This document shows, piece by piece, positions 2,702 through 47,370 of a stretch of DNA of 64,000 nt. Numbering within the stretch: the first letter of the stretch is position 1; each line of letters opens with the position of its first letter. The notes under the pieces were generated by a model. The model was not told where the DNA came from, ran no database searches, and worked only from the letters and a program-made list of their open reading frames with translations. Source of the stretch: Gekko japonicus (taxonomy: Eukaryota); assembly GCF_001447785.1 (NCBI RefSeq), contig NW_015171530.1, positions 186,001 through 250,000 on the forward strand, written 5' to 3'. A program made the translations under genes and the position numbers.

Positions 2702-3713
2702 GTGAGTACGTGGGGGGGGGTGCCCATGGCATGGGCAAAGGTGAAAGGGCACCTGGGGCTGGGGGGAAAAGGGGCTGTGAGAGACAAGCCAGCAGACTAT
2801 GGGGAGCAGAACGTGTTGGGGGGGGGGAAGAGGTCCAAGGGGATTCTGAACTAAAAAGTGGAGCAGAAGGCAGGAGCTCAGGTGGAAGTGATTCAGTTAC
2901 TGGGGGTGGGATTTTTCTCAGCCATGTTGGGGTGGTGTTGGTGGTGAAAGTGGGTGTATAAACATTGCAATAAATATCAATAAATCCGGGGTACCAGGAG
3001 GCTGGCAGGAGGTGAGAAAGATGGGGAAAACATCCTTGGGGCAGAAGCACAGAGGAAGGGCTGTGGGTGACTGGGGTGGAGTAGCAGGAAATGATCACCA
3101 GGACTGAGTTTGGAGGGCAGAGGCCAGAGAGTCCGGCAGTGAGCACAAAGGCTGGTCTCTTACTTGTATCCTGTTAACAGTGTCCTGCTGGGATCTTACC
3201 AGCGTCTTACTAGCTCCCAGTGACAGTTGTGTGTGTAAAAACTAAACAGCGGTCCAGTGGCACCTTAAAAGTGAATGAACGTTATTCTGGCATGAGATTT
3301 TGTGAGAACTCTGAGCTCTGATTTATGAAGGTTACTACTGGTGTGTTTTTGCTAGCCTTTCAGGTGTCATTGGACTTCTGTTTAATTGTTCCACAATAGT
3401 TTAACATGACTGCCTGTCTTTAGGGTTAGGGGATGTACAGAACGTGGAAGTTATCCAGTTCTTCTTCAGGGGGCTTAAACAGTAAACTGGGTGTGATAAA
3501 AAAAGAGAGGATGGCATGTGGGGGAAGCCACTGAAATGGCAACAGAAGATTAAGCCATTATGAAATTGCCCCAGATGCTTCAAGTACTTTCTTGGGGTCC
3601 CCCCCCATTTTTGAAATTTTTTTACTTTTCTGTCGAGGCAAAAGGCCCTCTGTTCTGTAGAAAGCCTGTTACTGAAGATCACTTCTGTCTTGTCTCTCTC
3701 TCCACAGGAGGTG

Positions 3714-3975
3714 ATGTCAGCCGAAGCCACGGCAGACCCGGTTCCGTCCCCGGAGGCCTGTGCTCCGCTAGTCCCAACCCAGCAGCGACGGGATGGCGGG
3801 GGCGGGGTGGCGGGGGCGACCTTTGACCTCAAACCTCTGAACCCCAGCAGCAAGTATGTGAAGCTGAACGTGGGGGGGTCCCTCCACTACACCACGGTGC
3901 AGACCCTCACCAAGCAAGACACCATGCTCAAGGCCATGTTCAGTGGCAGGATGGAAGTGCTGACAGATAGCGAAG
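3714..3975 (+). CDS. KCTD13: KCTD13 (BTB/POZ adaptor for CUL3-mediated RhoA degradation, BACURD1), coding exon 1
   Basis: Acceptor ...ccacag at 3707, ATG 3714, MSAEA...[15 protein letters not shown]...[18 protein letters not shown], donor GT 3976. Six exons of 262+170+90+53+196+243 nt join in frame to 337 aa. Confidence 0.95.
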
Positions 3976-5154
3976 GTATCTCCTAATGGTGTCTTTGCCC
4001 CACCCTGTAGCCAGTTTACGAGACAGGAAGGCCGGTAGGCAGCTCTCTTAAGTCAATAAAGTGTGAAGGCCAGCTGGGAGCTCTGGTTTGTCGGAAGAGG
4101 GTGCCACTGCTTTGTGAATCATATCTGCCGTTCAGTATGGCAGAGGGAGAAACCATAAACAGTTTGGATTTTAAACAAAGAACTTCCCGGTTTCTCTGTA
4201 TGCAGATGAAAGCTTTGATGGGCTGGAGGATTTTTTTTTTTAATAAACTTCCATTTATTTAAGTTATGGATACTCTGCTCTGCTTCCAGGGCTCTAGATG
4301 GGTTAAGTAAATGTTTATCATTTTAAATTCAAAAAGTTAAATGTTCCCTGATACTGTCAAACAGCACGAAGATGTCGAAGCTGACACATCTAGGCAAGAG
4401 CACAAGGGTTCTCGTGACAGTCGCCTCTTGATGTTTTTGGAGTCTCTTTGGGACTTGATTATTGCTGAAATATTTCAGTGGGTGATTTTTTTAAAAAAAG
4501 GGAAAAGGATTTGTTTCACATTCCTTGAGGATCTTGTAAGCTGTTCGAGGAAGCAGCCTTGGCTGTTGATGCCTTTTCGTCAGTGACCCGAAAGACCAGC
4601 TGGCCATCTTTGACACGGCTCTTGCCGAAAATGAGCTCCTAATTATCCAGCCAATGGCAGGAGCCAGGCTTGATTTTTTTCCCTTTGCCGATGAATCTTT
4701 TTCTGAGAGGCAGGAGGGACCCAGTCCCTGTTCCTTTCCTCTTGTCTCCTACCAGCAGGTTTCCCTCTGTCCCATGGCATCCCTTTACTTTAATTTATAG
4801 TCTATGCAGGCCTGAGGGCTTATAATTATTTACAATGAATCATCTGTGTATGTAACACTTCACAGAGCAATGCAGGCAGGACCCAGACAAACAAGGAAAA
4901 AACCATTTAAAAAGCCTTGATACATTCCCTGAGTATGCAGTTTAAGATTTGCCAGTGGGAAGATGAGTGGGTTTTTTTTTTAACTTAAATATTTAGAGGA
5001 CAAGAGCTGAGAAATCACATTGGCCTTGTACGGCATTCTGGCAAGTTTAGTAGCAGACCTCAATCGGGGAGAGGCTGTGGCTCAGTGGAAGCGCCTCTGC
5101 TTGGCATGCAGAATGTCCCCAGCATCTCCAGTTTAAAAAAGAACTAGCTACCAG

Positions 5155-5361
5155 CAATGTTCCCTCTAAGCTGTGGAGTCCTATGAGCAGAAATTCTACT
5201 TTGTGAGCTACTGGCATTAAAGTTGTGAGCAGGTAGTTTGGCTGCTGCATAAAATTAGTTTGCTCTGGAGCCATCTTTCCTGAGCTAAGACAAAAATGTG
5301 TGAGCTGGAGGCTAAAAAACTGTGAGCTAGCTCACACTAACTCAGCTTAGAGGGAACACTG
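5155..5361 (+). mobile_element. hAT-type MITE (~205 bp), copy 1
   Basis: TIRs CA(A/G)TGTTCCCTCTAAGCTG ... CAGCTTAGAGGGAACACTG; 8-bp TSD GCTACCAG. Confidence 0.85.
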
Positions 5362-6508
5362 GCTACCAGGTGATGTGAAAGGCCTCCGCCTGAGAACCTC
5401 ACTGCCAGGCTGAGTAGACAATAACGATCAGAGCTTTGGGGGGGGGGGAGGGGGGAGAAGAGGTGCTGGAACTCTCTAGAGGGAAATGAAGTTTTCAATC
5501 GGCATACTGAAATCTCATGAACTTTTAAACATTTTAAAAAGAATTTTGTCAAAAAAGGTTCCGGAACGCCATCCTGGCGCGTTCCCCCAGAAAAGAAGCC
5601 TTGACTCTGATAGGCCAGTGGTCTGATTCAGTGTAAGGCAGTTTCATGGGTTACCTGAGCAAATAGGTTTAGCAAAAGCTAAACGAAACCAATAGTCTGT
5701 TTTGTCCAACATCGTTTCTCACACAGCGACTCAGGAAGGACCACAAGTAGGGTGCTAAGGCCAAAGCTCCCCCTTCCCCCCGCCCCCCAGGGACTGGTAT
5801 TCAGAATTCTCCAGTCTCCGAACATGGAGATTCTCTTTGGCCATTATGGCAAATGGCCACTGATCGACCTGTCATCCATGAGTGTTTCCAGTCCATGTTG
5901 TTTAAGGCCACCTAAGCTAGTGCTCCTCACTACGTCTTGTGTCAGTGAATGTTGGGTGAAGAGGTTGTATCTATTGCCGGTCCTAAATCTCCCGCCTGTT
6001 GATTTCACTGGCAAACTCATGCCGGCAAGAGCGAGTCTTATGTCCAGCTATTTAAAAAAAACCAAAACTATCCCTTGAACTTCATGGCAGAAGCTCTGTA
6101 GCAAAGAGAGAGATTCTTCCTGTCATGGTTCAAATGCAGTTGAAAGTAATTTTGTACTTCAGATATGAAAGGTCAGGCACCCCTCCACCCAAGCTCTACA
6201 CCTGATTTACCTTTTGCCCCTCAGCTTGTTGTTCTTAATAGTACAAGCCAAACAGTGTGGCAACAGACACACAGCAAATATCTACGGCTAATAATTAAAA
6301 AGTAAGCAAAAGCATTGTGAATTAACATGTAGGATTGTTTTTGCAACATAATAAGCAAAATCAACTATAGAAATAGTACTATTTTCTCTATCATGGTCCG
6401 GTGCAAAACCAAGCAATATTTAGTCGGACGTGAAACAGGGCTGCCTTCTTGTTGCTGTTCCCCGCTCCTCTTCTGATGGAACCATAAACATCCGTTTGCT
6501 TTTGCCAG

Positions 6509-6678
6509 GCTGGATCTTGATTGATAGAAGCGGGCGCCATTTTGGAACCATCCTGAATTACTTGCGAGACGGTTCTGTTTCCCTCCCCGAGTCCCAGCGG
6601 GAGCTGGAAGAGGTGCTGTCTGAGGCCCGGTACTACCTGATTCAAGGCTTAGTGGAGGACTGCCAGCTGGCGCTCCAG
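6509..6678 (+). CDS. KCTD13: KCTD13 coding exon 2
   Basis: [22 protein letters not shown]...DCQLALQ; AG/GT bounded, phase consistent. Confidence 0.95.
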
Positions 6679-6814
6679 GTGAGCATCTCCCTGCTGAGAA
6701 ACCAGGGACGTTTAGCATCCCGTGCTGCTCTCTTCAAGGGCAGAACAGCAGCTTCTGAGTTGCCTCATGAGGCGGCAATGTCTCTCTCATCTCTTCTTTT
6801 TGTTCCCTGCTCAG

Positions 6815-6904
6815 CAAAAGAGTGAAGCCTTTGACCCTCTCTGCCACATCCCCATGGTGACGTCTCCAAAGGAGGAGCAGCAGATCATCTCAAGCTGTTC
6901 CAAG
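6815..6904 (+). CDS. KCTD13: KCTD13 coding exon 3
   Basis: [30 protein letters not shown]; AG/GT bounded. Confidence 0.93.
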
Positions 6905-7003: not shown

Positions 7004-7194
7004 CAGTGCTCCCTCTAAGCTGTGGAGTCTTGCGAGCAAAAATTCGACTTTGTGAGCTGCTGGCATTAAAGTTTTGAGCAAGCGATTTGGCTGCTGCATA
7101 AATTAGTTTGCTCTGGAGCCATCCTTCCTGAGATAAGACAAAAATGTGTGAGCCGGAGGCTAAAAAACTGTGACTCAGCTTAGAGGGAACACTG
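7004..7194 (+). mobile_element. hAT-type MITE, copy 2
   Basis: Same TIRs; TSD GTGCCCTC. Confidence 0.85.
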
Positions 7195-9618: not shown

Positions 9619-9824
9619 CAATGCTCCCTCTAAGCTGTGGAGTCTTGTGAGCAAAAATTCTACTTTGTGAGCTACTGGCATTAAAGCTGTGAGCGAGCGA
9701 TTTGGCTACTGCATAAGTCAATTTGCTCTGGAGCCATCCTTCCTGAGCTGAGACAAAAATGTGTGAGATGGAGGCTAAAACACTGTGAGCTAGTTCACAC
9801 TAACTCAGCTTAGAGGGAACATTG
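9619..9824 (+). mobile_element. hAT-type MITE, copy 3
   Basis: Same TIRs; TSD GTTCCAAT. Confidence 0.85.
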
Positions 9825-16302: not shown

Positions 16303-16793
16303 NNNNNNNNNNNNNNNNNNNNNNNNNNNNNNNNNNNNNNNNNNNNNNNNNNNNNNNNNNNNNNNNNNNNNNNNNNNNNNNNNNNNNNNNNNNNNNNNNN
16401 NNNNNNNNNNNNNNNNNNNNNNNNNNNNNNNNNNNNNNNNNNNNNNNNNNNNNNNNNNNNNNNNNNNNNNNNNNNNNNNNNNNNNNNNNNNNNNNNNNNN
16501 NNNNNNNNNNNNNNNNNNNNNNNNNNNNNNNNNNNNNNNNNNNNNNNNNNNNNNNNNNNNNNNNNNNNNNNNNNNNNNNNNNNNNNNNNNNNNNNNNNNN
16601 NNNNNNNNNNNNNNNNNNNNNNNNNNNNNNNNNNNNNNNNNNNNNNNNNNNNNNNNNNNNNNNNNNNNNNNNNNNNNNNNNNNNNNNNNNNNNNNNNNNN
16701 NNNNNNNNNNNNNNNNNNNNNNNNNNNNNNNNNNNNNNNNNNNNNNNNNNNNNNNNNNNNNNNNNNNNNNNNNNNNNNNNNNNNNNNNNNNNN

Positions 16794-17586: not shown

Positions 17587-18059
17587 AAATCTTTTCTTTA
17601 TCCCTAGTTGTAGTCCCCCTTCCTTTATTTTCTGTTGTAGTTATGTAGTCTATTGAAAAACCAATAAAATTACCCTCTTGGGGGTTTAAAAACAAACAAA
17701 CCATACAAACCATAGTATAATATGTACAACGAAGGTCCAAAGCAGTAAAGTGACGAAACCTCCAGATAATATACTTGTTTTGCGAGTCTTCTAATTTGAA
17801 ACTCCAAAAACCATTTTTTCTACTTGTTGAACAAGTCTGGATACAGTTAATAAATCAACAGTCTTTATGCAGGAAGAACAAATTCTTATGCAAGTTTGCA
17901 AGGCATATCAGAAAGTTGGGCCATTCCATTAATCAAAGTAGAAAGAAAAGTCAGAAGGCTACATTGCCACCTAACGGGCTGAAATTTTTAAAGGAAAATA
18001 ATTTAAAAGGAGTCACCCCACCCCGTCAACAATTCAAACGAACCAACCCCATCTCTCCT

Positions 18060-18800
18060 CAGGATGACAGGAGGATGAGCGGGCTACCGGCCATTGGGGG
18101 GGAGGAAGACGCCCGTGGGCCACATGACCACGGCGAGGTCACATGACAGGCGCCATGTCACGTGCGACGACTACCTCCCCGGAAGCCGCGGTGCTCCGCG
18201 AGTCACATGACCAGAGGAGGCCAAAGGGGGAAACGGTCACGTGGCGGGGGCTGGCTGGCTGGGTGAATGTGCCGGGCGGGCTTCGGGGTAGCCTGGGCCT
18301 GAGAGCGGTGGAGGGCGGGTGCGAGATCGGAGCCGAGGGGGCCGCAGTGCAGCTAGGGGGCGGCTGGCCAGGGGCGAGCGGGCGCGCTTGGGGCCTGGGG
18401 CAGAAGGCAGGGGACGCCGCCGTTCGGGGCCTTCCTCGGGACCTGCGCTGTTCGCAGAGGAGCTCCCTGGTCGCGTTGAGGGGGGCCGGGAAGGCTCACG
18501 TTTGCGCGGAAAGGCTCTGGGCGGGACGGGGCCTCGCTCGAATCAAAAGGCTGGGAGGGAGGTCGGTGACCCACCCAGGGAGAAGCGAAGGCTGGAATTC
18601 GGGTTTCGAAAGCGCTCTGTTGGTCTAGAGTGCCTCGGCGAAGGTTGCGGAGGAGCACAAGGAAGGGCCCCTGGCGCGAACTGAGAGCTTTCCTGGAGGC
18701 TGTGGGGAAGGAAACCCCTCTACGGTGTGGGTCCGTGAAAGCTCTGTGTGTGGGGGGCGGGGGTACTTATAGGAAAGACGGGCACCTGAAGGAAGGTTGA
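18060..18800 (+). promoter_or_regulatory. CpG-island promoter of the NUFIP2-like gene
   Basis: High CpG, five CACATG/CACGTG E-boxes at 18121-18244, ETS CCGGAAG, candidate donor GT at 18263. Confidence 0.7.
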
Positions 18801-19211
18801 GGGGCAACTCATAATTTGATTTTTGTTCGCTTTCCACATTAGGCTGTAAGTGGCGCGTCTGTTGAGGGTTAGGTTAGGTAATTGAGGCTTAAGCTACAGC
18901 AGGGGAAAAGGAGTCTCTATCCCGGCACTAGAGATTTCCCTTTCTTCCTCTGAAGTGTGATCGCAAGGCTTCTTAGGGTCGTCCTTCGAGAAATCTGTGG
19001 AGTCGGGCTGACATCTTTGCTGTGTGTGTGTGCGTGCTTCAGTTTGGCTTTGCCACTTCTAGAAATAGGCCACTAGTTTTTAGGGCGGGGGGAGATTGGC
19101 TAGGCACTGTTTCTTAACAGGGGTAGGCTTGGAACAGTGCTGTAGTCAGGCCTTTCACATCCTTGGGGTCCTCTGCTGTCGGCTACCTGCATCCAAGACT
19201 AGCTTTAGACC

Positions 19212-19323
19212 ATGCAGAAAGAGGAATTGGGCATGGATGAGAACCGCAACCCTGAGGAAGAGCTGCGTCTTCTGGGGGGAAAGAAGGAGAAATGCCACAG
19301 CCTCAGCAACCGCATCCGGACAG
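19212..19323 (+). CDS. NUFIP2-like protein, first coding exon (predicted)
   Basis: accATG, MQKEELGMDENRNPEEELRLLGGKKEKCHSLSNRIRT, phase-1 donor G|GTAAC that matches the phase of the next exon; in-frame TAG just upstream. Confidence 0.65.
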
Positions 19324-19554
19324 GTAACAAATATTGGCATTCCATGCTTGGTCTCTGATGCCATAGAACGTCTTAGGTTGATTTTAAAAATCCAGGTTCC
19401 TGAGCATTCAGAGTATAGCAATTTACCATTGATAAAGATTTTAGTTTTAGAAAAATTGCTTTACCCCCCAGAGACTTCAGAGTTTTCACACTTCTTTGTC
19501 CCTCTCCATTCTCACCCCACCTAGGTATCTTTATTTAGTTTTAAAATTTATTTT

Positions 19555-19770
19555 ATCCATACCCTGCCTTTCACTCCAGTTGGGACCCAGAGTAGTTTAC
19601 ATCATTCTCCTCTCCCCCATTTTATCTTCACAACCACCCTGTGAGGTAGGTTAGGCTGAGAGGATATGACTGGCTCAAGGTCACCCAGCAAGCTTCCATG
19701 GCACGAGTGGGAATTTGAACCTGGATTTCCCAGATCCTAGTCTGACACTTTAACCGCTACACCACACTGT
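19555..19770 (-). mobile_element. Older tRNA/CORE-type SINE
   Basis: CACAACCACCCTGTGAGGTAGG...CAAGGTCACCCAG...TTAACCGCTACACCACACTG. Confidence 0.6.
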
Positions 19771-21199
19771 CTTTCCATGCAAGCCCCAAATTCATAGTAG
19801 AAGAGTTTTCAAATTTCTCAGCACATGAAGATGTGCCCCTCTCCTTTTCTTGGGAAAGAGAAATGCACCTCTGGAATGCATTCATCTCTCACTCCATGCC
19901 TGAACTGCATTTGAGACAGATTACCATGGCTGCAGATCTCCTCCTCCCCCCCTCCCCGGTACAGCCAGATTGCCTAGTATGAAAGGCCCTGCCGTTATTC
20001 ACTAGCCACCCTAACCCTTCCACAGAATCCAGGGGCATCCACAGTCATTTACTCCTCCTTGGTAACTCTGAATTCACTATACTACATTTTGGTCCCAGAG
20101 AATCAGTTTCTGTTTCTCACTGAGCCAAGCCCAGTACAGTGGCTCCAGTCTGAGTTACTGCCCTTTGTAATGTACGTCTGTGTTATAGCTGTCCTTAATG
20201 CCTGTCACTGTTAAGTAAAACCTTCTTTCTGTCATGCAGGAGCTGGAGCAGAGCTGGGCTACAGGCCAAGCCAGGGCTCCAGAGAAGGTGAATTTGGGAC
20301 TGGGGCTTTCCCCTTCTGTCATGTTGTTTTGTGTGTGTTTCTCTCCCAGAAACAGCCAGGCCTTACTGTTGGAAAAATCATGCACCTCCTAATTCAATCT
20401 GTCTGATTTTCTCAACAGCTGCTGTTGAGGAATATACATTGTCCTCTTTCCCATATATAGCTTTGGTGCATGACCCACATACCCCTTTATTCCTTTTCAC
20501 CAAGAATGGTACCTTTAGATTTGATGATTTTCTAAGCCAGTGTCAGAGGGAAAAAGCTCATGGCATTTGGAAAGCCCTAACTACTTTGCCAAATCGTGTA
20601 AAGGTGATCCCTTCTGATATTTTGGATCATGGTTTTAAAATCTTCAGAGGTTGGCAGCACAGAAGTATTTTGTTTAAAACACTTGACAGAATCTTCAGAG
20701 GTTGGCAGCACAGTGACAGAAGTATTTTGTTTAAAACACTTGACAAGAAGATTTTGGCCAGTGAAGGAGGGGATCCTTCTGGGTACACGGCCGTAATTGC
20801 TAGGGTACGATTGATTTTTAATCAGTGTTCCCAGGGGTGGAGAGAAATGGATATGTATTTCCACCTTTAAAGTAATGTTTTTCCTTTTTTTACAATACCA
20901 GCATTCAGTGCTTAGATACTGTGGTGACCTGGTATCTGACATTTTCTTAACGCAGCCCCTAAATGTTAGTTGAGCTGTTTGCCTAGTTTTGTTGTGCTAC
21001 AGGAAGGCAGACTCTAATATGATGGTGATAAATCAGCAACAAAAATGATGCTGTACAGCTTTTCTTGAAGGGGCGGTTCTCTGCCTCATGGGTTTACAGT
21101 CTAAATTTCAAAAAGGGAGGAGGGAAACCTATAATATTGTGTGTGTGTATCTGTTATCAATCCAGATGTTGAGTTCACTCCACAATCCTTCTGCTCTAG

Positions 21200-22039
21200 G
21201 TTCCTGGGAGTCCAACGGCTATTCTGCATCCTCAGAGATCGCCGATGAGCCCAGCGTTCCCTTAAGCCCTTCTAACAGCCTTAACATCCGCAACCTCCAA
21301 TTGTCTGAGCGAGACCCTCCGGTCACCCACCACCCCCACCGCTATCCCCATCGCTTCTACCATGGCCGGCCCTTCCATGCAGCTGCCTACCGCAAGACCT
21401 ACCGAGGCAGCCCCTCTGATCGCAAGGAATGGGGACCCAGCACCAACGGCCACCACTGCGCTCCTGAAAGCATTTCTAATGGGCGGTGGCAGCACCGTCG
21501 CCGTGGCTATTCTGACCCACCGTCTCCATCGTCATCTCCGGAATCGGAACGAGACAGCGCCATCAAAGTCGGCGAGAAGCCTGCCGTTACATCAAATGCC
21601 ACCAATTCAGCCACCGAGGATTCTGGGAAGGAAACATGGTCGCTTTTCCGGCCACTTCCTGCTTTCCCGGTTGATAGCAGCAGCGCCCGGATCATTCCTA
21701 AGATCTCTTATGCTAGCAAGCTGAAAGAGAACTTGGATCAACCAGGGAAAGCCTGCCATGTTCCTGCCTCAGCCGTCCGCACCACCAACAGCCTCCCCAA
21801 CTGTGTCCTGGCGCCACCCCCAAGCAGTCCCCCACCCTCTGACAGCAGCCGGCAGCAGCACCTGGGAGCCATCTTTCAGAATGAGTGGGGCTTGTCCTTT
21901 ATCAATGATCCAGGAGCAGGGCATGGAGGGGGTGGTGGGACTGCACCAGAGAAGGATGTGGAAGATGCAAACACTGGAGCATGCTGGGAGAAAATGGAAG
22001 CCGATGACTGGCAAGCTGCAAGAAATTATCACCTGGAAG
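21200..22039 (+). CDS. NUFIP2-like protein, large central exon
   Basis: 840-nt open exon with NUFIP2 motifs WSLFRPLPAFPVDSSSARIIPKISYASKLKENL and LGAIFQNEWGLSFINDP, ending DWQAARNYHLE; AG/GT bounded. Confidence 0.88.
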
Positions 22040-22724
22040 GTAAGCTGGATGAAAGATCTTGATGTTGCCATCTAGGAGGGGCAGGCCTAGATATATGGTT
22101 TTGAGGGTGGGAGTAGAAAAATGAATGGGGTGTGGGGGAGAGTATGTGGGATTGTAGGGGATATGCAGAGATGCTGGGGGCAGAAATGTTCCAGGGGTCA
22201 GAACGATGGTTGCTGCAATTAAGTGGAAGGGATAATTCTGGTTATGTGTAAGGACATGTAGGGAATAAGGGACCAGTGCTATTCCTCTGTTTGCCTTTCT
22301 CAGCTTTTTCATTGCTTAATATGTGAAAAGGCCTGAGGGTACCTAGGAACTAGCAAGATTGTAGCTTCGGCTTCTGTGGGTTTAGCTAACATGCTACCCC
22401 TCTGAGCTGTATAAAATAGGTTCTTTTTTCTCTAATTCTACAGCTTCCCGTTTTCTGCAGTCAACACAAATTCCCATGCCCTCTTTTAGGCAGGTTGAGT
22501 GAATGGATTTGAAGGACTCCCCTCCCCCCTTGGGGTGCACGGAAATTGGCATCTGAATCCCAGCTCTCAGAACCATTGAAATTTAGGGACTTCATTAGAG
22601 GAGTGAGCTGCCTAAATGTAGCCGAGGAACTAGGTGGGATTGGTTCTGGGACTCACTTTTTGGTACAGGTTAAATTAGTGCCTGGCTTCTAATTTCCTTC
22701 TTTCCTCTCTTCTCCTAATTACAG

Positions 22725-22757
22725 AATGGACTCATATATGGGAGCTACACAGTCAAG
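22725..22757 (+). CDS. NUFIP2-like protein, 33-nt exon
   Basis: (E)WTHIWELHSQ, compare NUFIP2 EMESIWNLQKQ; strong polypyrimidine acceptor and GTAAGG donor. Confidence 0.85.
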
Positions 22758-23194
22758 GTAAGGAATCCCAGATCAGTGAGACCAGTTGTCCATCTTGCTC
22801 AGTTATGGCCCCGTTAACTACAGATCTCAAAACTCTGTCAAGGGGTGGGATGCGTCATATACAAACCTTGTACGTCTGCTTTGTGGAACAATGGCTCTAT
22901 CATTTCAATAGAACAGGTGTTAGAATTTGCACAGGGGTACAATTGGATGAACTTGGAGGGATGTCGGTAGGTAAAATAGCCTTAGGACAGCTACAGTTGA
23001 CTATCCCAATCTTAGGACAGATCGGGATAGCCAAATGTAGCTGTCCAAGCAACTTTCTTTACCTACCTATGTGGTTTTTTAAAAAAATGTCTTGTGGCTT
23101 TTGTTGAAAAAAATCATTTTCTCCAGTTTTGATGCACTGATTTAATGCACTNNNNNNNNNNNNNCTTTACTTTGGGCTTTAGATATAATGCCTA

Positions 23195-23412
23195 GGGATG
23201 ACAGCTTCAGGTTGGGAAATACCAGGAGATTTTGGGGGTGGACCCTAAGGAGGGCAGGGTTTGAGAAGGGGAGGGACCTCAGTGGGGTATAATGCCGTAG
23301 TAGAGTCCACCTTCCAAATCAGCCATTGTTTCCAGGTGAGCTGATCTCTGCTATCTGGAGATCAGTTGTAATCCAAGGAGCTCTCCAGCCAGCACCTGGA
23401 AATTGGCAACCC
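23195..23412. mobile_element. Non-autonomous DNA element with AGGGTTGCCA-type ends
   Basis: Related inverted copy at 42879-43078; ends in TTGGCAACCCT. Confidence 0.55.
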
Positions 23413-23947
23413 TAATAATGCCCCGGCCTTGCATAGATATTATAAGCTCCATAACTGTGGGACCTTTATTGGTAGGTAGTGCTGGTTTTATTCTGGAATC
23501 TGATGAGCCTTTAGTGGACTATATATTAAAATACTTCTGCTGCCCCAAGGGGACCCCCCCCCCCCCAGTGGGTCCTGAGTATACAGGGATTAATCATCGT
23601 CCCTTGAGGCTTCTGTCTCTGCAACAGCAGGTGAAGAGGGAAGGAGGAGTGGGGGCTGTTCCATGATCTACAGTATGAGAAGATGAAGGAGCTGTACAGC
23701 AGGAAGATTAGAGCTACTGGTGTCATTATCTAACTTGTGGGGAAGTGGGTGAGGATGAAGTTGCTTAAGGTTAATTCTGCCAAGCCATGTGGAGAACTGC
23801 ATCTGGGGGAATAATGTGTTGACCATTTTAATACAGTATGGGAACTTGGGGGGGGGGTGAGAATAGGCATTGGAACATGCACACTACCTGTAGCTCCTCT
23901 CCGGTTGTTCCACTGCATTATCCGTTTCTGTTCTTTTCTCTGTACAG

Positions 23948-23997
23948 CTCCTAGCAAAGTGACGGTCTATGTGGACACCTTGGATGGAAAGGGTTAA
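23948..23997 (+). CDS. NUFIP2-like protein, last coding exon
   Basis: (A)PSKVTVYVDTLDGKG*, compare NUFIP2 DPKRIITYNEAMD; AATAAA at 24286-24291. Confidence 0.82.
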
Positions 23998-25289
23998 CAC
24001 CGAGGATTCCTTGGGGAAGCACTGCTAAGATCCGGGGGGTGGGGGGGCACGGGGGAGAGGCAAGGCATCCCCCCCACCCCACCCCATGAAGACTGGAGAA
24101 GCCCGGGCATCCTGAAAGGGGAAGCTATGCCACCTGCCTCCCTTCCTCCCTCCCTCATCCTAATGCTGTTATAGCCCAAATTGTCCTGGATGGGGCTGAA
24201 GTCTCACCCTCCCCGCCCCCTCCGATTTAATGCTCTGGTTTTTAATTTCTTCACATGGTTTTTAATTTCTCTGGATTCCCCTGAAAATAAAAGTGAAAAA
24301 AAGAATTTATTTAAATTCACCTCTCTGTTCGTATGTGTTTTTGTTTCCTATCCAGTGCACTCTAGGATTATTGGGATAGATCACACAATTAGGGAAGGAG
24401 AAAGGAATTTCTGGAAGCAGCGCAGGCTGTGGGGCATCACTAGAAGGAAGCAAAAATATTTGATTTAGAAACCAGGTTGTTGTTTGAACATCTTATTACT
24501 GCTAGATGCTGAGAAGGCTCATTTACATCTGTGGTGGCGAAGTTTTCCTTTCTGTACCAGTTTACTTTTTGCCTTCCCAGTGAGGGGACAAGCTGATGTG
24601 GCTTTTCCCTCAGTGATTCTTTTGAAGGGACACATTTACAACCTGGCAGCTATCTAGTTACCTAGAATAGGGATATGGAACCTTTTGGGCCCAAGTGCTG
24701 GAAAAAACACATCCATGTTGGTGTGCCATCAAAATAAAAACATTGGGGGGGTGAGATACTAAACAACCTGTTGGGCTGACTCCTTACTTTAAAAGCATAT
24801 CATTCTTTCATAAAAAAACCTGGGAGTTGATGTAGGCAGGCAGTTGCTATAATAAGAGCAGTCAGTTGATACTGGGTGTGTCTGGGTTGGTTCATGTTAG
24901 GGAACAAACAGAAGTAGCTTGCTGTATCCCGGGGAAGACTGGCCATGGCAACGCTAATAACTCCTTGCTGGGGTGAGGGAGGACTCTTTAGTAAGAATGA
25001 TCCTTTACTGGGGCTTGAATTAACCTAAACAACTACCACCCAGGGGCTAATATTCCATCTTTGGGCAAGGTAGTGGCTCTACAGCTTCAGGCAAACTAGG
25101 AGGAAACAAGACTATCTGGATCCGTTTGGGGATGGAAACACCTTGGTTGCCCTGACCTTTGCCAGAAGCATGATGGGGAGCTGATTTTCCTGGACCACTC
25201 AGCAGCTTTCGATATTATCAACTACGGTCTCCTGGAGAGGCTGGGAGCTGGGGACACTGTGATTTTGGTAGTTCTGCTTGTACTTGGCC

Positions 25290-31375: not shown

Positions 31376-31663
31376 TGAGTGTGGTGGAACCATCCCCTTC
31401 ACCTCGGTGAAAGGAGGAAATGCTCTTTGTCATTGACATGTAAACGTGATTCAATTAGTGAGCAAAAACCCAATTACAATTTATTGCCCTTCAGTCCAAC
31501 AGTGCCTTTGCAGTCGGAAGTGCAAGGACTGGTCAGCCCTGCCCAGTGATGTGATCCCTGCCTTGGCCAGTGGCTTCAGGAGGGGACAGGGTTTTCTCTT
31601 GCAGCACAGCGTGACATCACTTCCTCCCGAGTCGGCAGTGAACTTCAGAAAAAGGGAAGAGAA

Positions 31664-33019
31664 ATGGAGCAGGAGTGTCTGGCTCTCGTCGCGGCCTGTG
31701 TCCAAACCTCCCAGTTGCTAGTGCAGCAATGGATGCTCAACAGGCGCACCGTGGTTTTTGCCATAGCGAGGATTCTGCAGCGGAGGCGCTTCCGCAGATC
31801 CGCTGCCGTCCTGAGGCGCATCCTCTCCGCCAGCGTCCGCCGCAAGAGAGCCCTGCTGCGGCTTCATCGCAACGCTATCGTCTCCGTGGTCACGATGGTG
31901 TACTCCTCGTCCCCCGCGCTCCACTATGAGCACGAGCTGATGGCCTTGTCGGAGCGGTCACACTGGATGCTTCCAAGATGCAGCGAGTGGTGGGAGCGGA
32001 TGATCTCTTCGGAGCAGGACGACAAGTGTTGGATTTCCTTGTTCAGAATGTCACGCTCCACCCTCATGTATATCGCGGAGGAGCTGCGCCCGGCCCTGCA
32101 GCGGCGAGACACCGGCATGAGGTCCCACATCCCCGTCGAGAAAAGGGTCGCCATGACTATCTGGAAGCTAGCTCACCACGACAGCTACAAGACCGTCTCT
32201 GAGCTCTTCGGGGTCGGGATTTCGTCGGCTTGCTCCATCTTCGAAGAGGTGTGCGAGGAAATAAATAGCCGGCTCCTGGCCCAAACCATTCAGCTGGGCG
32301 ATCCTCGGAAAATCATGGAAGGTTTCCAGGAGATGGGCTTCCCCAACTGCCTTGGCGCGATCGATGCCGTGCACATCTCCATCTTGTGCCCCCCATTCTC
32401 TGCGGACTCCTACATTAACTGTAAGGGCTTCTACTCGATGGTCCTGCAGGCGCTGGTGGACAGCAGATCCCGTTTCACTGACATCTACGTCGGTTTTCCC
32501 GAGCGGTCCCACGACTCCCGCATCCTGCACAACTCGCCCTTCTTCAACAGTATGGACGATGGCGCCTTTGGGCCGCAGACCCCAACAGTTTTGGAAGGCG
32601 TTTCGATGACCCCCGTCATCATTGGGGACGCCGCCTACCCGCTCCGCCCCTGGCTGATGAAGCCGTACCCTACTCCAAAAACTGTGGCACAAGAGCATTT
32701 CAATGAGAGGCTAGCCAAGTGCCGGGCGTGCGTGGAGAGAGCGTTCGCCGTCCTGAGAGCTCGCTGGAGGTGCTTGCAGATGCGACTGGACGTGCGGGAG
32801 AAGCTCATTCCTGTTGTCATAGCGACTTGCTGCATCCTGCATAACATATGCGAAATAAAAGGGGATGAGTTGCTGGAGCCGCTGGAAAGTCCTCCGGCGG
32901 CTGAAAGTCAGAACGCTTCAGCCAGGCCAAGGGTGCCGCTATCAGAGGCTGGGCTGACCAAGAGAGCATGCCAGATAAGGGCTGCTTATTGTTCTTATTT
33001 TGAAAAGAATCCTCTGTAG
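31664..33019 (+). CDS. Intact PIF/Harbinger transposase-derived protein (HARBI1/ALP1-like, DDE_Tnp_4 family), 451 aa
   Basis: Uninterrupted ORF with FRMSRSTL, EKRVAMTIWKLA..helix-turn-helix..LFGVGISSA, CLGAIDAVHI, NCKGFYSMVLQALVD, HDSRIL, IGDAAYPLRPWLMKPY, CVERAFAVLRARWRCL and CCILHNICE; AATAAA at 33120. Confidence 0.9.
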   Translation: MEQECLALVAACVQTSQLLVQQWMLNRRTVVFAIARILQRRRFRRSAAVLRRILSASVRRKRALLRLHRNAIVSVVTMVYSSSPALHYEHELMALSERSHWMLPRCSEWWERMISSEQDDKCWISLFRMSRSTLMYIAEELRPALQRRDTGMRSHIPVEKRVAMTIWKLAHHDSYKTVSELFGVGISSACSIFEEVCEEINSRLLAQTIQLGDPRKIMEGFQEMGFPNCLGAIDAVHISILCPPFSADSYINCKGFYSMVLQALVDSRSRFTDIYVGFPERSHDSRILHNSPFFNSMDDGAFGPQTPTVLEGVSMTPVIIGDAAYPLRPWLMKPYPTPKTVAQEHFNERLAKCRACVERAFAVLRARWRCLQMRLDVREKLIPVVIATCCILHNICEIKGDELLEPLESPPAAESQNASARPRVPLSEAGLTKRACQIRAAYCSYFEKNPL

Positions 33020-33717: not shown

Positions 33718-34109
33718 ATGTGTTTTCTGATTCACTTAGTTATCTTGTCTTTAGCATAGGCCAGGAGGCCCCAAGTTTGGTGAACCTGTGGGCACAATGG
33801 AATTTTTGAAAATGGGTAAGTGGGGTGCCACCATCAAATGACTGCCATGCGTAGGGAGCAACACTAACCACAGTATGGCTGCCACGGAGGCTGGGGCCAG
33901 TCACAAAATGCTGGGAGGTTCCAAGTCAAGGATCTTCCTACAATGGAGCGAACCGTTTCCAAATGGTGCTCCCTGAAGACACAAAGGTGATGCCTCTTGG
34001 GCTTCCCTGGAGCATCTCCTGCTCCAATGAGATGAAGGAAGGCAAGCTCTGGCTCTTTGGTATCAGGGAAGAGATGCTTTGGCAAAAAAGCAGAGGATAC
34101 CATGATGGT

Positions 34110-35030
34110 GTCCTGGATGGCATACATCCGAGAGTTCTGAAAGAACTCAAATGTGAACTTGTGGATCTCCTTACAAAAATATGTAATCTTTCATTAAAAT
34201 CTGCCTCCATTCCTGAAGACTGGAAGGTAGCTAATGTCACTCCCATCTTTAAAAAGGGTTCCAGAGGAGATCTGGGAAATTACAGGCCAGTCAGTCTGAC
34301 GTCGATACCGGGTAAGTTGGTGGAAACTGTTATTAAGGAAAGAATTAGTAGGCACATTGATGAACAAAAACTATTGAGGCAGACTCAGCATGGGTTCTGT
34401 AAGGGAAGATCTTGTCTCATTAACCTGTTAGTGTTTTTTGAGGGAGTGAACAAACATGTGGACAAGGGGGACCCAATAGATGTTGTTTACCTTGACTTCC
34501 AGAAAGCTCTTGATAAAGTTCCTCATTAAAGGCTCCTAAGTAAGCTCAATAGTCCCGGGATAAAAGGAGAAGTCCTCTTGTGGATCAAAAACTGGCTAAT
34601 TAATAGGAAACAGAGAATGAGTATAAATGGGAAATTTTCTCAGTGGAGGGTGGTAAGCAGTGGGGTACCACAGGGATCAGTACTTGGTCTGATGCTTTTT
34701 AACTTGTTTATTAATGATTTGGATTTGGGAGTAAGCAGTGAAGTGGCTGAATTTGCAGATGACACAAAGTTGTTCAGGATGGTGAGAACCAGGGAGGATT
34801 GTGAGGCACTCCAAAGGGATCTGTCGAGGATGGGCGAGTGGGCATCAACGTGGCAAATGGGGTTCAGTGTGGTCAAGTGTAAAGTGATACACATTGGAGC
34901 CAAAAATCCTAAATACAAATACACATCGATGGGGTCCAAAATGGCAGTGACTGACCAAGAGAGAGATCTTGGAGTAGTAGTAGATAACTCAATGAAAATG
35001 TCTAGATAGTGTGCAACTACAATAAAAAAT
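34110..35030 (+). mobile_element. CR1 LINE ORF2 (reverse transcriptase) fragment
   Basis: DGIHPRVLKEL, PEDWKVANVTPIFKKG, NYRPVSLTS, QHGF, YLDFQKA, GVPQGSVLG, FADDTKL; in-frame stops at 34527 and 35007. Confidence 0.92.
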
Positions 35031-42208: not shown

Positions 42209-42415
42209 CGGTGTTCCCTCTAAGTTGAGTCAGTGTGAGCCAGCTCACAGTTTTTTAGCCTCCAGCCCACACATTTTTGTCTTAGCTCAGGAAGGATGGC
42301 TCCAGAGCCAACTAATTTATGCAGCAGCCAAAATCGCTCGCTCACAACTTTAATGCCAGTAGCTCACAAAGTAGAATTTTCGCTCACAAGACTCCACAGC
42401 TTAGAGGGAGCATTC
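42209..42415 (-). mobile_element. hAT-type MITE, copy 5 (reverse)
   Basis: Reverse complement of the 5155 copy; TSD degenerate. Confidence 0.8.
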
Positions 42416-43883
42416 GTTTCAACCTATTTCATCTTTACAACAACCTTACAAGGTTGTTACTGAGTTGCCGGCCCAAGGTCATTCCGCAAACTTCAGTGTT
42501 GAACCATCTGGGTCTCCTAGGCTGTCCTCTGACCCTTCAACCCAGTGATTCTCAAACAGTTTGAACTGGACTCCACTTCTAAACTTAGCACAGCTTTTAG
42601 GACCAATTTTTAAACTTCTCATCATTTGGGAGGAACCGACTTGCAAAGTAATACCTCATTATTTTCCCCTTCACCAGCTTAAACTGCACAAACTGTATTT
42701 CAGTTAACACTGAACAGGTTTTATTTATATTTCCTATAGTTTGCATTTATTTAGCATTACTAAGCAACTAGCTGCATTTCACATTCATTTTGGATTTCGG
42801 TCTGCAGAATGTGAAAATTTGCCCCTCCGAAACTTCTCTCCAGTTGATTTTGTTCTTCTTTGACTTGTGACCCACCTGTATGGTTGCCAACTCCAGGTGG
42901 CACTTGGGAGAGCTCCCACTACTACAGTTGATCGCCAGACAATCAAGATCAGTTCCCCTGAAGAAAAGGGCAGCTTCAGAGGGTGGACTCTATGGCATTA
43001 TACCTCTGCAATCCCCACCTTCCTCAGGCCCCACCCCTAAAATCTCCAGGTATTTCCCAACCCACAGTCGGCAACCCTCCCCACCTGTGAAAGAGACGTG
43101 ACTAACGTTTAGGGTCTTGACCTGCAGTATGAGAAACGTCGCTCTGCACTGGTTCTCATTAAACTCCATTGGCTCTGAGATACTGGGTTGGAGTGATAGT
43201 TGAAACCACAATGGGGTGAATTCATGTCAAGCTCTAGATTTAACAATCCTGTGTCTTCTAAACTCCTGAAAATGACCCAGCAACCCTCTCCCTTGGCCTC
43301 CCAAGTTTTGCTTTCTCCCTCACTCTTTTCTTCAGGCTCCATATCGCCATTGTTTCCTCAGGTCCTTTTTCCTTAAAGCCACCCGGATTCCTGACCCGCT
43401 TCACCAGGATTTTATCGTAAATCATGCCCTATTTTTAAACACTGCGAATCTTTTAGGACCCACTTTCTATTTAAGCACTTCATGCCTCATTTCCCTGCAC
43501 TCTATCCCGTAGGCTTCTGTTTCCGTTTCTTCCTTGGCAATCACCTGTCCATTAGCTGTACTTAACCAGTTCCTAAGGCCAAAGTCCTCAGCCATCCCTT
43601 GTAATGCTATCATAAATTCCCAGGCAAAATGAGCATTGCTCCTTCCCTCACAAAAGCTGGACTGCAGAGTGCTCTTTCTCTTGAGCCACTGCAGCAGCCA
43701 ATGAAATAGTACTGAGAACTTCACTGCCACAAGGCCTGTGAAGCACTGATCATACTGTGGGTAGCTTCATTTAGGGTGAGAAGTGAGGCCATTTTACAGA
43801 ATTGTGGATGGGTCTCATTTCAAACTAGTCAGCTTTTTCAAAAGGTATAACTTTGAAAAGGGACCTACTCATTTAGAATATGA

Positions 43884-45635: not shown

Positions 45636-47370
45636 NNNNNNNNNNNNNNNNNNNNNNNNNNNNNNNNNNNNNNNNNNNNNNNNNNNNNNNNNNNNNNNNN
45701 NNNNNNNNNNNNNNNNNNNNNNNNNNNNNNNNNNNNNNNNNNNNNNNNNNNNNNNNNNNNNNNNNNNNNNNNNNNNNNNNNNNNNNNNNNNNNNNNNNNN
45801 NNNNNNNNNNNNNNNNNNNNNNNNNNNNNNNNNNNNNNNNNNNNNNNNNATTCTCTTACAGGATTCCTCTTCTGCCTTCATAAAGAGATCTCATAGCGCT
45901 GGAGCTGCTGGGAGACTCCCCTCCCGTCCTTTCACAGGGATGCCCCCTGTTCCTTTTAGTGAGCCAGCCTCCGCCCTCCCCCCCCCAAGGCTTCACTTCT
46001 GTAGCTCCCTTCTCCCGTAGCTCCTTTTTTCCTTAGCTCCTCTAAAACCCAAGCAAAAGAGGCCGAGGCTGGAGAGACCCCCGGATGCCCCGTGACTCCT
46101 ATCACAGGGGCCTTCTTCATCCAGGGGAGCCGGTGAGAGTTCCCTCTGCGCCCCTTCTTTGACTGGAGGAGTTGGAAAAGAGGAGGGCGTCGGGGGTGTA
46201 CTCCCCACCCCATATATCCTGGAGCTGGAGCCTCAAGGGGGACAAAACCTAGGCAGCTGCAAAGACTTACAGGTGAGACTCAAATACGTAGCTAAAGGCG
46301 GGTGGCAAAGGTGGAATCTTTTGGGGGAAGAGGTTGGGGGAAGGAAACGGAAGGTGAAAGGGCCTGTGGAACAAAGACAGAGGCGATAAGCCTATTCTGT
46401 GAGAATCTAGTTCTCCCCTCCCCACAATTATCTCTCTCAGAACAAGTACAAAATTTGGACCTTTTAGGTTAGGAAGTGCATTTCCTCCCCTCCTTTCTTT
46501 CTTCTCTTGAGGGCTTAAAAGAGCAATGGTTTACCTCCCCCCAAAAAAAAATCTTTTAGGCATCATTTGTTTTCTAGTTGAGCCCAAGAGTTCTGGATCC
46601 AAGATGATTCTTCCTCTTCCTTTCCTGTTAAACTTTTATTTGGGGGAGGCCTAAGAACCTCCTGCAGGTAGATCCTGGATTCTGCCTCCTGTCATCCAGA
46701 TGCCTTGTTGCCCTATGCCCGGGGAAGGCTGGCTTTGGCACTCCACCCCTAATCTGGTTAAACCCCACTCCCTCTTTGGAACTCATAGATCAGGGTACAG
46801 GCCTCCCTATCCATTCCCCTCCTAAGCAACTTGGGGGGTCCTAGCTCCCAGCCCCCCTCCATTAGACCCAGTTCTGCTTCCAAGGAGTCCCATTCTTGTG
46901 TCTTTAGATGGTTTGACAGGTCTGCATTCGTGAGACAGTTTAGAATGAAGGGCTGTCGTGGAGCCCCTTGGGAGTTGTAATTCTGGTGCGGAGAGGGCTG
47001 CTGGAGTGAACACAGGGAGTGCATTTCAGGAAGGTGAGGTGGGTGACCCCTTCTTTGCATCTGGGTTTTGTGTTCCATCGCATTTTTGTGAATTGAGGGT
47101 GGGGGTGGAATTGCAATTCAGGGTTTTTTTGCTATGGGAGAGGATGGGTGTCATGCCAGCACTGCAGAAGAATTAGTTTTGACATGAGGACTTGGATGGG
47201 AAAAAGATGAGGTGTATCCTGACTGGAGTGGTCTTTCTTTAAGATCCTGTAGGTTTCTTCATGGCTGACCTCCTTGAGCCTGGAAAGTCCTACTTCCCAA
47301 TGGTGACAAACTAGAGGGGTAGCCTGAGTCTGCTGTGTGACAAAAACAGAGAGTAATTTCATGACAGGTC

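Follow-up and report, generated by a model that had tools for sequence, protein, structure and literature searches.

The window analysed here is a stretch of 64,000 nucleotides (nt) from Gekko japonicus (contig NW_015171530.1, positions 186,001 to 250,000 of the forward strand). On its + strand, between KCTD13 and TMEM219-TAOK2, neighbours that are all on the + strand as well, lies a gene that is in all likelihood intact, expressed and protein-coding, and that we regard as a second member of the NUFIP2 family, here named NUFIP2L. Its orthologs range from sharks to squamates, and its split from NUFIP2 is most simply read as that of ohnologs dating from the two rounds (2R) of whole-genome duplication. 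An earlier note on this DNA, made from the sequence alone, had proposed a four-exon NUFIP2 paralog of 344 amino acids (aa) at this position, retained in reptiles after such a duplication.

Gene structure and expression

The 344-aa model consists of four coding exons that were each translated separately and that join in frame, with GT..AG at all borders; the codons split across the three exon joints are GGT, GAA and GCT, and the model ends in TAA. RNA was mapped over 19000-24400, with the reads of three RNA-seq runs whose labels give the same species and with an older contig run; the libraries are unstranded, and the + orientation of NUFIP2L was taken from the splice sites. All three junctions predicted from the sequence were seen in the three RNA runs: 19323/21200 with 20, 83 and 18 reads, 22039/22725 with 49, 134 and 25 reads, and 22757/23948 with 42, 101 and 23 reads, the last also in one transcript contig of 2039 nt. 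Exon 2 was covered at a depth of 25-320x. The features of the gene are the following.

18000-18800, + strand: CpG island with the likely promoter and transcription start; GC content 0.60-0.74, observed/expected CpG 0.74-0.87 (whole-window comparison value 0.39)
19212-19323, + strand: coding part of exon 1, 37 codons and 1 nt; the translation starts MQKEELGMDENRNPEE and agrees with the N-termini of the orthologs, with an in-frame stop upstream according to the list of open reading frames (ORFs); the 5' untranslated region (5'UTR) continues beyond 19000
19323/GT, + strand: donor of exon 1, used by the RNA reads
20240-20287, + strand: alternative cassette exon of 48 nt, in frame, GT..AG on both sides, adding 16 residues
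21200-22039, + strand: exon 2, the large exon, with 279 full codons of the 344 residues and the Pfam NUFIP2 match
22725-22757, + strand: exon 3, a micro-exon of 33 nt with the translation WTHIWELHSQ; both junctions confirmed by RNA
23152-23164, no strand: assembly gap (run of N) within intron 3 (22758-23947), non-coding, with no codon affected
23948-23997, + strand: coding part of exon 4, the last exon, with the translation PSKVTVYVDTLDGKG*; stop TAA at 23995-23997
23998-24281, + strand: 3'UTR covered by RNA, its extent being marked by the depth, by fragments that end at 24279-24281 and by the contig, which ends at 24281
24286-24291, + strand: AATAAA hexamer, candidate poly(A) signal, the sole AATAAA/ATTAAA in 23991-24400

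The separate exon translations and the RNA junctions thus bear out the four exons, their borders and the 344-aa frame, but the earlier model missed the 48-nt cassette exon. Its junctions were supported by 16, 56 and 13 reads (19323/20240) and by 52, 124 and 22 reads (20287/21200), and they also occurred in one contig, while its translation, AGAELGYRPSQGSRE, agrees with isoform X1 of both Rhineura and Sceloporus. Reads that include and reads that skip the cassette were about equally frequent, and the predicted isoforms have 344 aa (cassette skipped) and 360 aa (cassette included), a pair that is annotated in other squamates too (Podarcis X2, Rhineura X1, Sceloporus X1). The spliced reads at 22757/23948 bridge the assembly gap, which places exons 3 and 4 on one mRNA whatever the true length of the gap, and the length of intron 3 is the only uncertain point that the gap leaves.

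In the transcript contig, the 5'UTR reaches upstream of 19000 by 460 nt or more, into the CpG island with the likely promoter; a CpG-island promoter had also been named in the earlier note. At the other end, the AATAAA that had been put forward as the poly(A) signal is present, but its use is unconfirmed: coverage by RNA reads and by the contig ceases near 24281, 5 nt ahead of the hexamer, with an A-rich run adjacent. This stop at 24279-24281 may reflect a non-canonical upstream signal; alternatively, the A-rich stretch may have caused an artefact of alignment or priming. Both the transcription start and the 3' end of NUFIP2L are approximate.

Besides, a few reads were seen to go back by 57, 67 or 75 nt within exon 2 (21786-22033; 3-7 reads per joint); possible causes are an artefact of the library, an allele with a small tandem duplication, or back-splicing. 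Interspersed repeats at 19543-19723 (intron 1) and 23163-23343 (intron 3) showed low RNA depth, with many loose ends and mismatches that stem from other genomic copies; they are no exons of NUFIP2L.

Conserved motifs and predicted structure

Membership in the NUFIP2 family, as claimed in the earlier note, was confirmed by the match of exon 2 to the Pfam family NUFIP2 (PF15293), which scored 98.5 bits (cut-off 27; E=5.7e-28). All three motif blocks that had been listed for NUFIP2 were found in NUFIP2L, where they are conserved, and they align with NUFIP2 of squamates, mammals, frog, coelacanth and chimaera. In NUFIP2L they follow the patterns W.LF.P.P.FPVD.SSA..PKISYASK.KENL (block A), LG.IFQN.WGLSFIN.P (block B) and YH..E...W.L...DP..V.Y (block C), and are located as follows.

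21637-21735, + strand: block A, WSLFRPLPAFPVDSSSARIIPKISYASKLKENL, 65% identical to residues 338-377 of Rhineura NUFIP2
21862-21912, + strand: block B, LGAIFQNEWGLSFINDP, candidate motif for binding the NTF2-like (NTF2L) domain of G3BP, invariant in 16 orthologs
22006-22039, + strand: start of block C (C-terminal helix), DWQAARNYHLE, which runs on through exons 3 and 4

Block A contains columns that are invariant across both paralogs, the Phe codon at 21898-21900 in block B (residue 271 of the 344-aa form) is by alignment the equivalent of F511 of NUFIP2, and block C aligns with the NUFIP2 C-terminus; the C-terminal DGKG encoded by exon 4 is kept across the tetrapod orthologs. The two proteins also share a weak N-terminal stretch and a short QVP.SA.K stretch, whereas NUFIP2L lacks the His/Gln-rich N-terminus and the long Ser-rich linkers of NUFIP2. 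AlphaFold2, run on the Podarcis ortholog with an alignment of orthologs, predicted a mostly disordered protein (mean predicted local distance difference test score, pLDDT, of 48), and the single confident element was a helix at residues 305-328 (pLDDT 81-88). A profile search of the PDB with the ortholog alignment gave no match, i.e., there was no solved structure for any member of the family.

Distribution of orthologs and constraint

Orthologs were collected with three word-index searches of proteins, in which exon 2, a 460-aa family member from a caecilian and tuatara NUFIP2 served as queries, and with a profile of 16 orthologs run on all 1.84 billion representative proteins. Exon 2 retrieved squamate orthologs that were 78-92% identical (Rhineura, Podarcis, Salvator, Tiliqua, Sceloporus, Candoia, Naja and Pseudonaja), with Rhineura LOC133367022 at 92%, as well as turtle orthologs at 41-51% and those of frogs and caecilians at about 32-42%. 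Most of these entries bear only an 'uncharacterized protein LOC...' name, and some are called 'NUFIP2-like'. The caecilian query led to the NUFIP2L group, with a salamander ortholog that also falls in the range of about 32-42%, as well as to true NUFIP2, and it brought in the coelacanth. The profile matched 71 proteins, which were scored against separate profiles of both clades and named by cluster look-up; the further short-type proteins gained in this way belong to lungfish, sturgeon, basking shark, two rays, bowfin and several teleosts. Overall, orthologs were thus found in sharks and rays, sturgeon, paddlefish, bowfin, teleosts, coelacanth, lungfish, amphibians, turtles and squamates, and the earlier description of a gene retained in reptiles proved too narrow.

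No short-type protein of a bird or mammal was found by this profile among the 1.84 billion representatives, which agrees, for predicted proteins, with the absence from human 16p11.2 stated in the earlier note. As the search with tuatara NUFIP2 showed, a separate, full-length NUFIP2 was present in carriers of NUFIP2L such as Rhineura (P0170), Tiliqua (P0159), Salvator, Naja, Carettochelys, Pelusios, Xenopus, Geotrypetes, Ambystoma, Latimeria and Polyodon, in line with the claim that the gene of the window is distinct from NUFIP2.

Three side observations concern individual lineages. The crocodilian copy (P0280 from Alligator and P0288 from a crocodilian-like Logan contig) is very rich in GC, Pro, Arg and Ala and carries the annotation 'translation initiation factor IF-2'; the alligator form is degenerate, having kept the N-terminus, block B and the helix and lost block A, and its model continues into a TMEM219-like last exon. 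Caecilians have two distinct short-type proteins per species (P0024/P0032 and P0028/P0035), on one large contig and 73-82% identical to the Geotrypetes ortholog, and NUFIP2L may have been duplicated in tandem in this group. Opossum, sugar glider and wombat have additional 'NUFIP2-like' proteins (P0270, P0275 and P0276); these marsupial proteins belong to the NUFIP2 type, are unrelated to the short paralog and may be retrocopies.

Several lines of evidence point to constraint on the protein. Of the 14 single-nucleotide polymorphisms (SNPs) in the coding exons, ten are synonymous and four nonsynonymous, against a random expectation of 23% synonymous (p=2e-4). Between Rhineura and Tiliqua, NUFIP2L is 90.7% identical and NUFIP2 81.2%, and at deeper nodes NUFIP2L evolves faster than NUFIP2. 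One could still suppose that the locus is transcribed without function, either as a decaying relic or as a non-coding transcript with an open frame by chance, since the crocodilian copy has decayed and the gene is seemingly dispensable in birds and mammals. We consider this extremely improbable, as the frame is open across four or five exons, the identity among squamates exceeds that of NUFIP2, synonymous SNPs prevail, spliced expression is robust and the motifs of NUFIP2L are invariant from shark to lizard. A pseudogene was rejected on the same grounds of open frame, conservation, SNPs and spliced expression, and a retrocopy was rejected because the gene has introns.

Phylogeny, neighbouring genes and origin

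Three trees were built, two quick ones of 60 and 46 rows and a careful one of 44 rows (IQ-TREE, LG+C20+F+G4 with posterior mean site frequencies, PMSF), the last without a ray fragment and P0259, which both have very long branches; no root is claimed for any of them. The careful maximum likelihood tree placed the NUFIP2L clade, shark included, on one side of a branch supported at 100/100 and NUFIP2 plus hagfish on the other, and the quick trees agree. On the NUFIP2 side it holds chimaera, sharks, ray-finned fishes and tetrapods, and both sides roughly follow the species tree. Since cartilaginous and bony fishes occur in both clades, the duplication predates crown jawed vertebrates, an age compatible with the ohnolog status suggested by the earlier note. 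A young duplicate of reptiles was rejected, as both clades reach the cartilaginous fishes.

The neighbours were identified by Pfam and PDB matches, and they confirm the KCTD13-TMEM219-TAOK2 block that had been recognised in the window.

3615-3983 and 6424-6822, + strand: BTB exons of KCTD13; Pfam BTB_2, best PDB match 4uij (BACURD1)
about 38.1-40.25 kilobases (kb), + strand: coding exons of TMEM219; Pfam PF14940
57.4 kb to the window end, + strand: exons of TAOK2; Pfam Pkinase, best PDB match TAO2, slightly above TAO3

For the KCTD13 exons, 4uij ranked slightly above 5fta (BACURD3, KCTD10), and we take BACURD1 to be KCTD13. The gene content of the human 16p11.2 block, with which this neighbourhood is compared, is likewise assumed. 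In human 17q11.2, TNFAIP1, the paralog of KCTD13, presumably lies near NUFIP2, so that the neighbours on both sides of NUFIP2L would be paired there (KCTD13/TNFAIP1 and TAOK2/TAOK1). NUFIP2, TAOK1 and SEZ6 of human 17q11.2 have also been placed in one deletion interval (PMC4886423). Block-wise paralogy of such age is a signature of 2R, and this argues against a small-scale duplication of NUFIP2, segmental or of the single gene, before crown jawed vertebrates, after which NUFIP2L would have landed or stayed next to TAOK2 either by chance or by the copying of a local block. The tree itself shows only that the split is older than the divergence of sharks and bony fishes and is silent on the mode of duplication, and the linkage of NUFIP2L outside the window is barely documented, both of which leave some room for such an event; with the paired neighbours taken into account, we nevertheless hold it to be improbable.

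Taken together, the tree and the neighbours make a 2R origin of the NUFIP2/NUFIP2L split the simplest reading. We propose a scheme in which a 2R block duplication before crown jawed vertebrates would have given rise to the pairs NUFIP2/NUFIP2L, KCTD13/TNFAIP1, TAOK2/TAOK1 and SEZ6L2/SEZ6. NUFIP2L would then have stayed beside KCTD13-TMEM219-TAOK2, being kept in most lineages and eroded in crocodilians.

Human KCTD13 is, we assume, on the strand opposite TMEM219 and TAOK2, and a local inversion around KCTD13 may separate the human lineage from that of the window. A Pfam scan of two fused NUFIP2L models, from a sturgeon (2087 aa) and a mormyrid (1040 aa), found no domain of a neighbouring gene and gave no support for synteny.

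The remaining features of the window are repeats and assembly gaps.

31550-33016, + strand: ORF of 489 codons for a Harbinger-type transposase (DDE_Tnp_4 with E=3.4e-29 and a weak HTH_Tnp_4), upstream of the TMEM219 coding exons
33855-35006, + strand: two adjacent ORFs with reverse-transcriptase-like sequence (..YRPVSLTS.. and ..FADDTKLF..), probably a fragment of a long interspersed nuclear element (LINE), located after the Harbinger ORF and before the coding exons of TMEM219
5050-5331, 7069-7179 and 9684-9794, - strand, and 42239-42460, + strand: recurring element in the KCTD13 introns and after TMEM219, with the translated stretch ..SSQFFSL.LTHFCLSSGRMAPEQTN.., probably a short interspersed nuclear element (SINE) or another interspersed repeat
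16303-16793: assembly gap between KCTD13 and the CpG island of NUFIP2L
45636-45849: assembly gap in GC-rich sequence upstream of TAOK2

Proposed function

NUFIP2 is reported to bind the NTF2-like domain of G3BP1, with F511 being critical (bioRxiv 10.1101/2025.11.30.691455, a 2025 preprint). In the 695-aa mammalian NUFIP2 sequences, the Phe of the block B segment WGLSF has the number 511, and human F511 is assumed to follow the same numbering. Given that the block with the equivalent Phe is invariant in NUFIP2L and that F511 is reported as critical in NUFIP2, we infer that NUFIP2L may also dock on G3BP. In this model, block B would contact the NTF2-like domain of G3BP1/2 as F511 of NUFIP2 does, block A and the C-terminal helix would bind other partners, and within the ribonucleoprotein and stress-granule networks centred on G3BP, NUFIP2L could be a compact adaptor or a competitor. 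The papers on Roquin and on atg8ylation gave no mapped region of NUFIP2 for the binding of FMRP or Roquin.

We tentatively propose that NUFIP2L is a minimal NUFIP2 that has only the partner motifs and that might tune, or compete in, the G3BP condensates of non-mammalian vertebrates, a role suggested because the granule-promoting low-complexity regions are absent. The low-complexity His/Gln region is thought to aid the entry of NUFIP2 into granules (PMC5775257), and its absence from NUFIP2L, together with a length half that of NUFIP2, could be taken to mean that NUFIP2L works outside the G3BP and stress-granule network, with block B kept for another partner, e.g., as a nuclear or signalling adaptor. 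We hold this option to be less likely than not, because block B and the F511-equivalent Phe have been invariant in both paralogs for more than 400 million years and a shared, equally conserved partner is the simplest explanation. If the reading as a minimal NUFIP2 is true, the stress-granule networks of birds and mammals run without the NUFIP2L regulator.

Several observations speak against parts of this interpretation, from the age of the gene to its role. The hagfish sequence (P0258) shifts its position between tree runs and failed as an outgroup, so that the root and the timing relative to cyclostomes are not fixed. Linkage of NUFIP2L to its neighbours outside the window comes only from the alligator gene model that fuses NUFIP2L remnants to a TMEM219-like last exon, and the NUFIP2 copies that accompany NUFIP2L all come from relatives of the window species. 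The absence from birds and mammals is drawn from predicted proteins rather than genomes, and GC-rich regions of birds often go unassembled. The proposed docking on G3BP derives from one preprint about the paralog. Block A is changed or lost in the copies of teleosts and crocodilians, and the functions of NUFIP2L may therefore differ between lineages.

The existence of NUFIP2L is not new, as it has been annotated automatically in dozens of species. Literature searches returned no paper on the gene under its database names, and none on the 16p11.2/17q11.2 paralogon either, a silence that we attribute to the gene missing from the two best-studied classes. As far as our searches show, the status of an ancient paralog with a range from shark to lizard, its apparent loss from birds and from mammals, its cassette exon and the link between the invariant block B and the reported G3BP-binding residue are new. 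NUFIP2L marks those stretches of NUFIP2 that have stayed unchanged in two paralogs since before the split of sharks and bony fishes and thereby gives a map of likely partner-binding motifs, with the binding of block B to G3BP NTF2L as a hypothesis that can be tested. It is also an ancient copy that most vertebrates retained and that is missing from birds and mammals. For fish and frog models of 16p11.2, NUFIP2L would be expected beside kctd13 and taok2, the adjacency being shown for the window; if this is true, the zebrafish and frog models of the region carry an extra, unrecognised gene.

Comparison with known systems

The closest known system is NUFIP2 (82-FIP, FMR1-interacting protein; PF15293), with which NUFIP2L has in common block A, the QVP.SA.K stretch, block B with the Phe of F511 and the C-terminal helix block, and both proteins are predicted to be largely disordered. 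In contrast, NUFIP2L has 344 or 360 aa and NUFIP2 about 650-710 aa, NUFIP2L forms a separate clade (100/100) and adjoins TAOK2 instead of TAOK1, and NUFIP2 is universal in jawed vertebrates while NUFIP2L is undetected in birds and mammals. Lying outside the NUFIP2 clade, being short and lacking the His/Gln tract, NUFIP2L is not a true NUFIP2 ortholog.

The same gene is found in databases as si:ch211-214j24.10 (a zebrafish-derived name used for teleosts), as Xenopus LOC100145486 / XB5854344.S, as 'NUFIP2-like' in Pelusios, Protopterus and many frogs, and as 'uncharacterized protein LOC114581571' in Podarcis muralis. These entries are orthologs, as they belong to the same clade, contain the same motif blocks and, in squamates, form the 344/360-aa pair. 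They are automatic predictions without described function, some of which are misnamed ('formin-like protein 7', 'translation initiation factor IF-2') or fused to neighbours.

A further comparison can be made with the G3BP-binding motifs of USP10, Caprin-1, UBAP2L and alphavirus nsP3, to which block B is similar in being a short conserved motif of a protein predicted to be disordered, and in keeping the Phe that is reported as critical in NUFIP2. The context of the Phe differs, being WGLSFIN in block B, unlike the FGDF of those motifs, and the likeness concerns a possible way of working and implies no family membership. NUFIP2 F511 itself has been reported to fall in the class of motifs that bind G3BP NTF2L (bioRxiv 10.1101/2025.11.30.691455).

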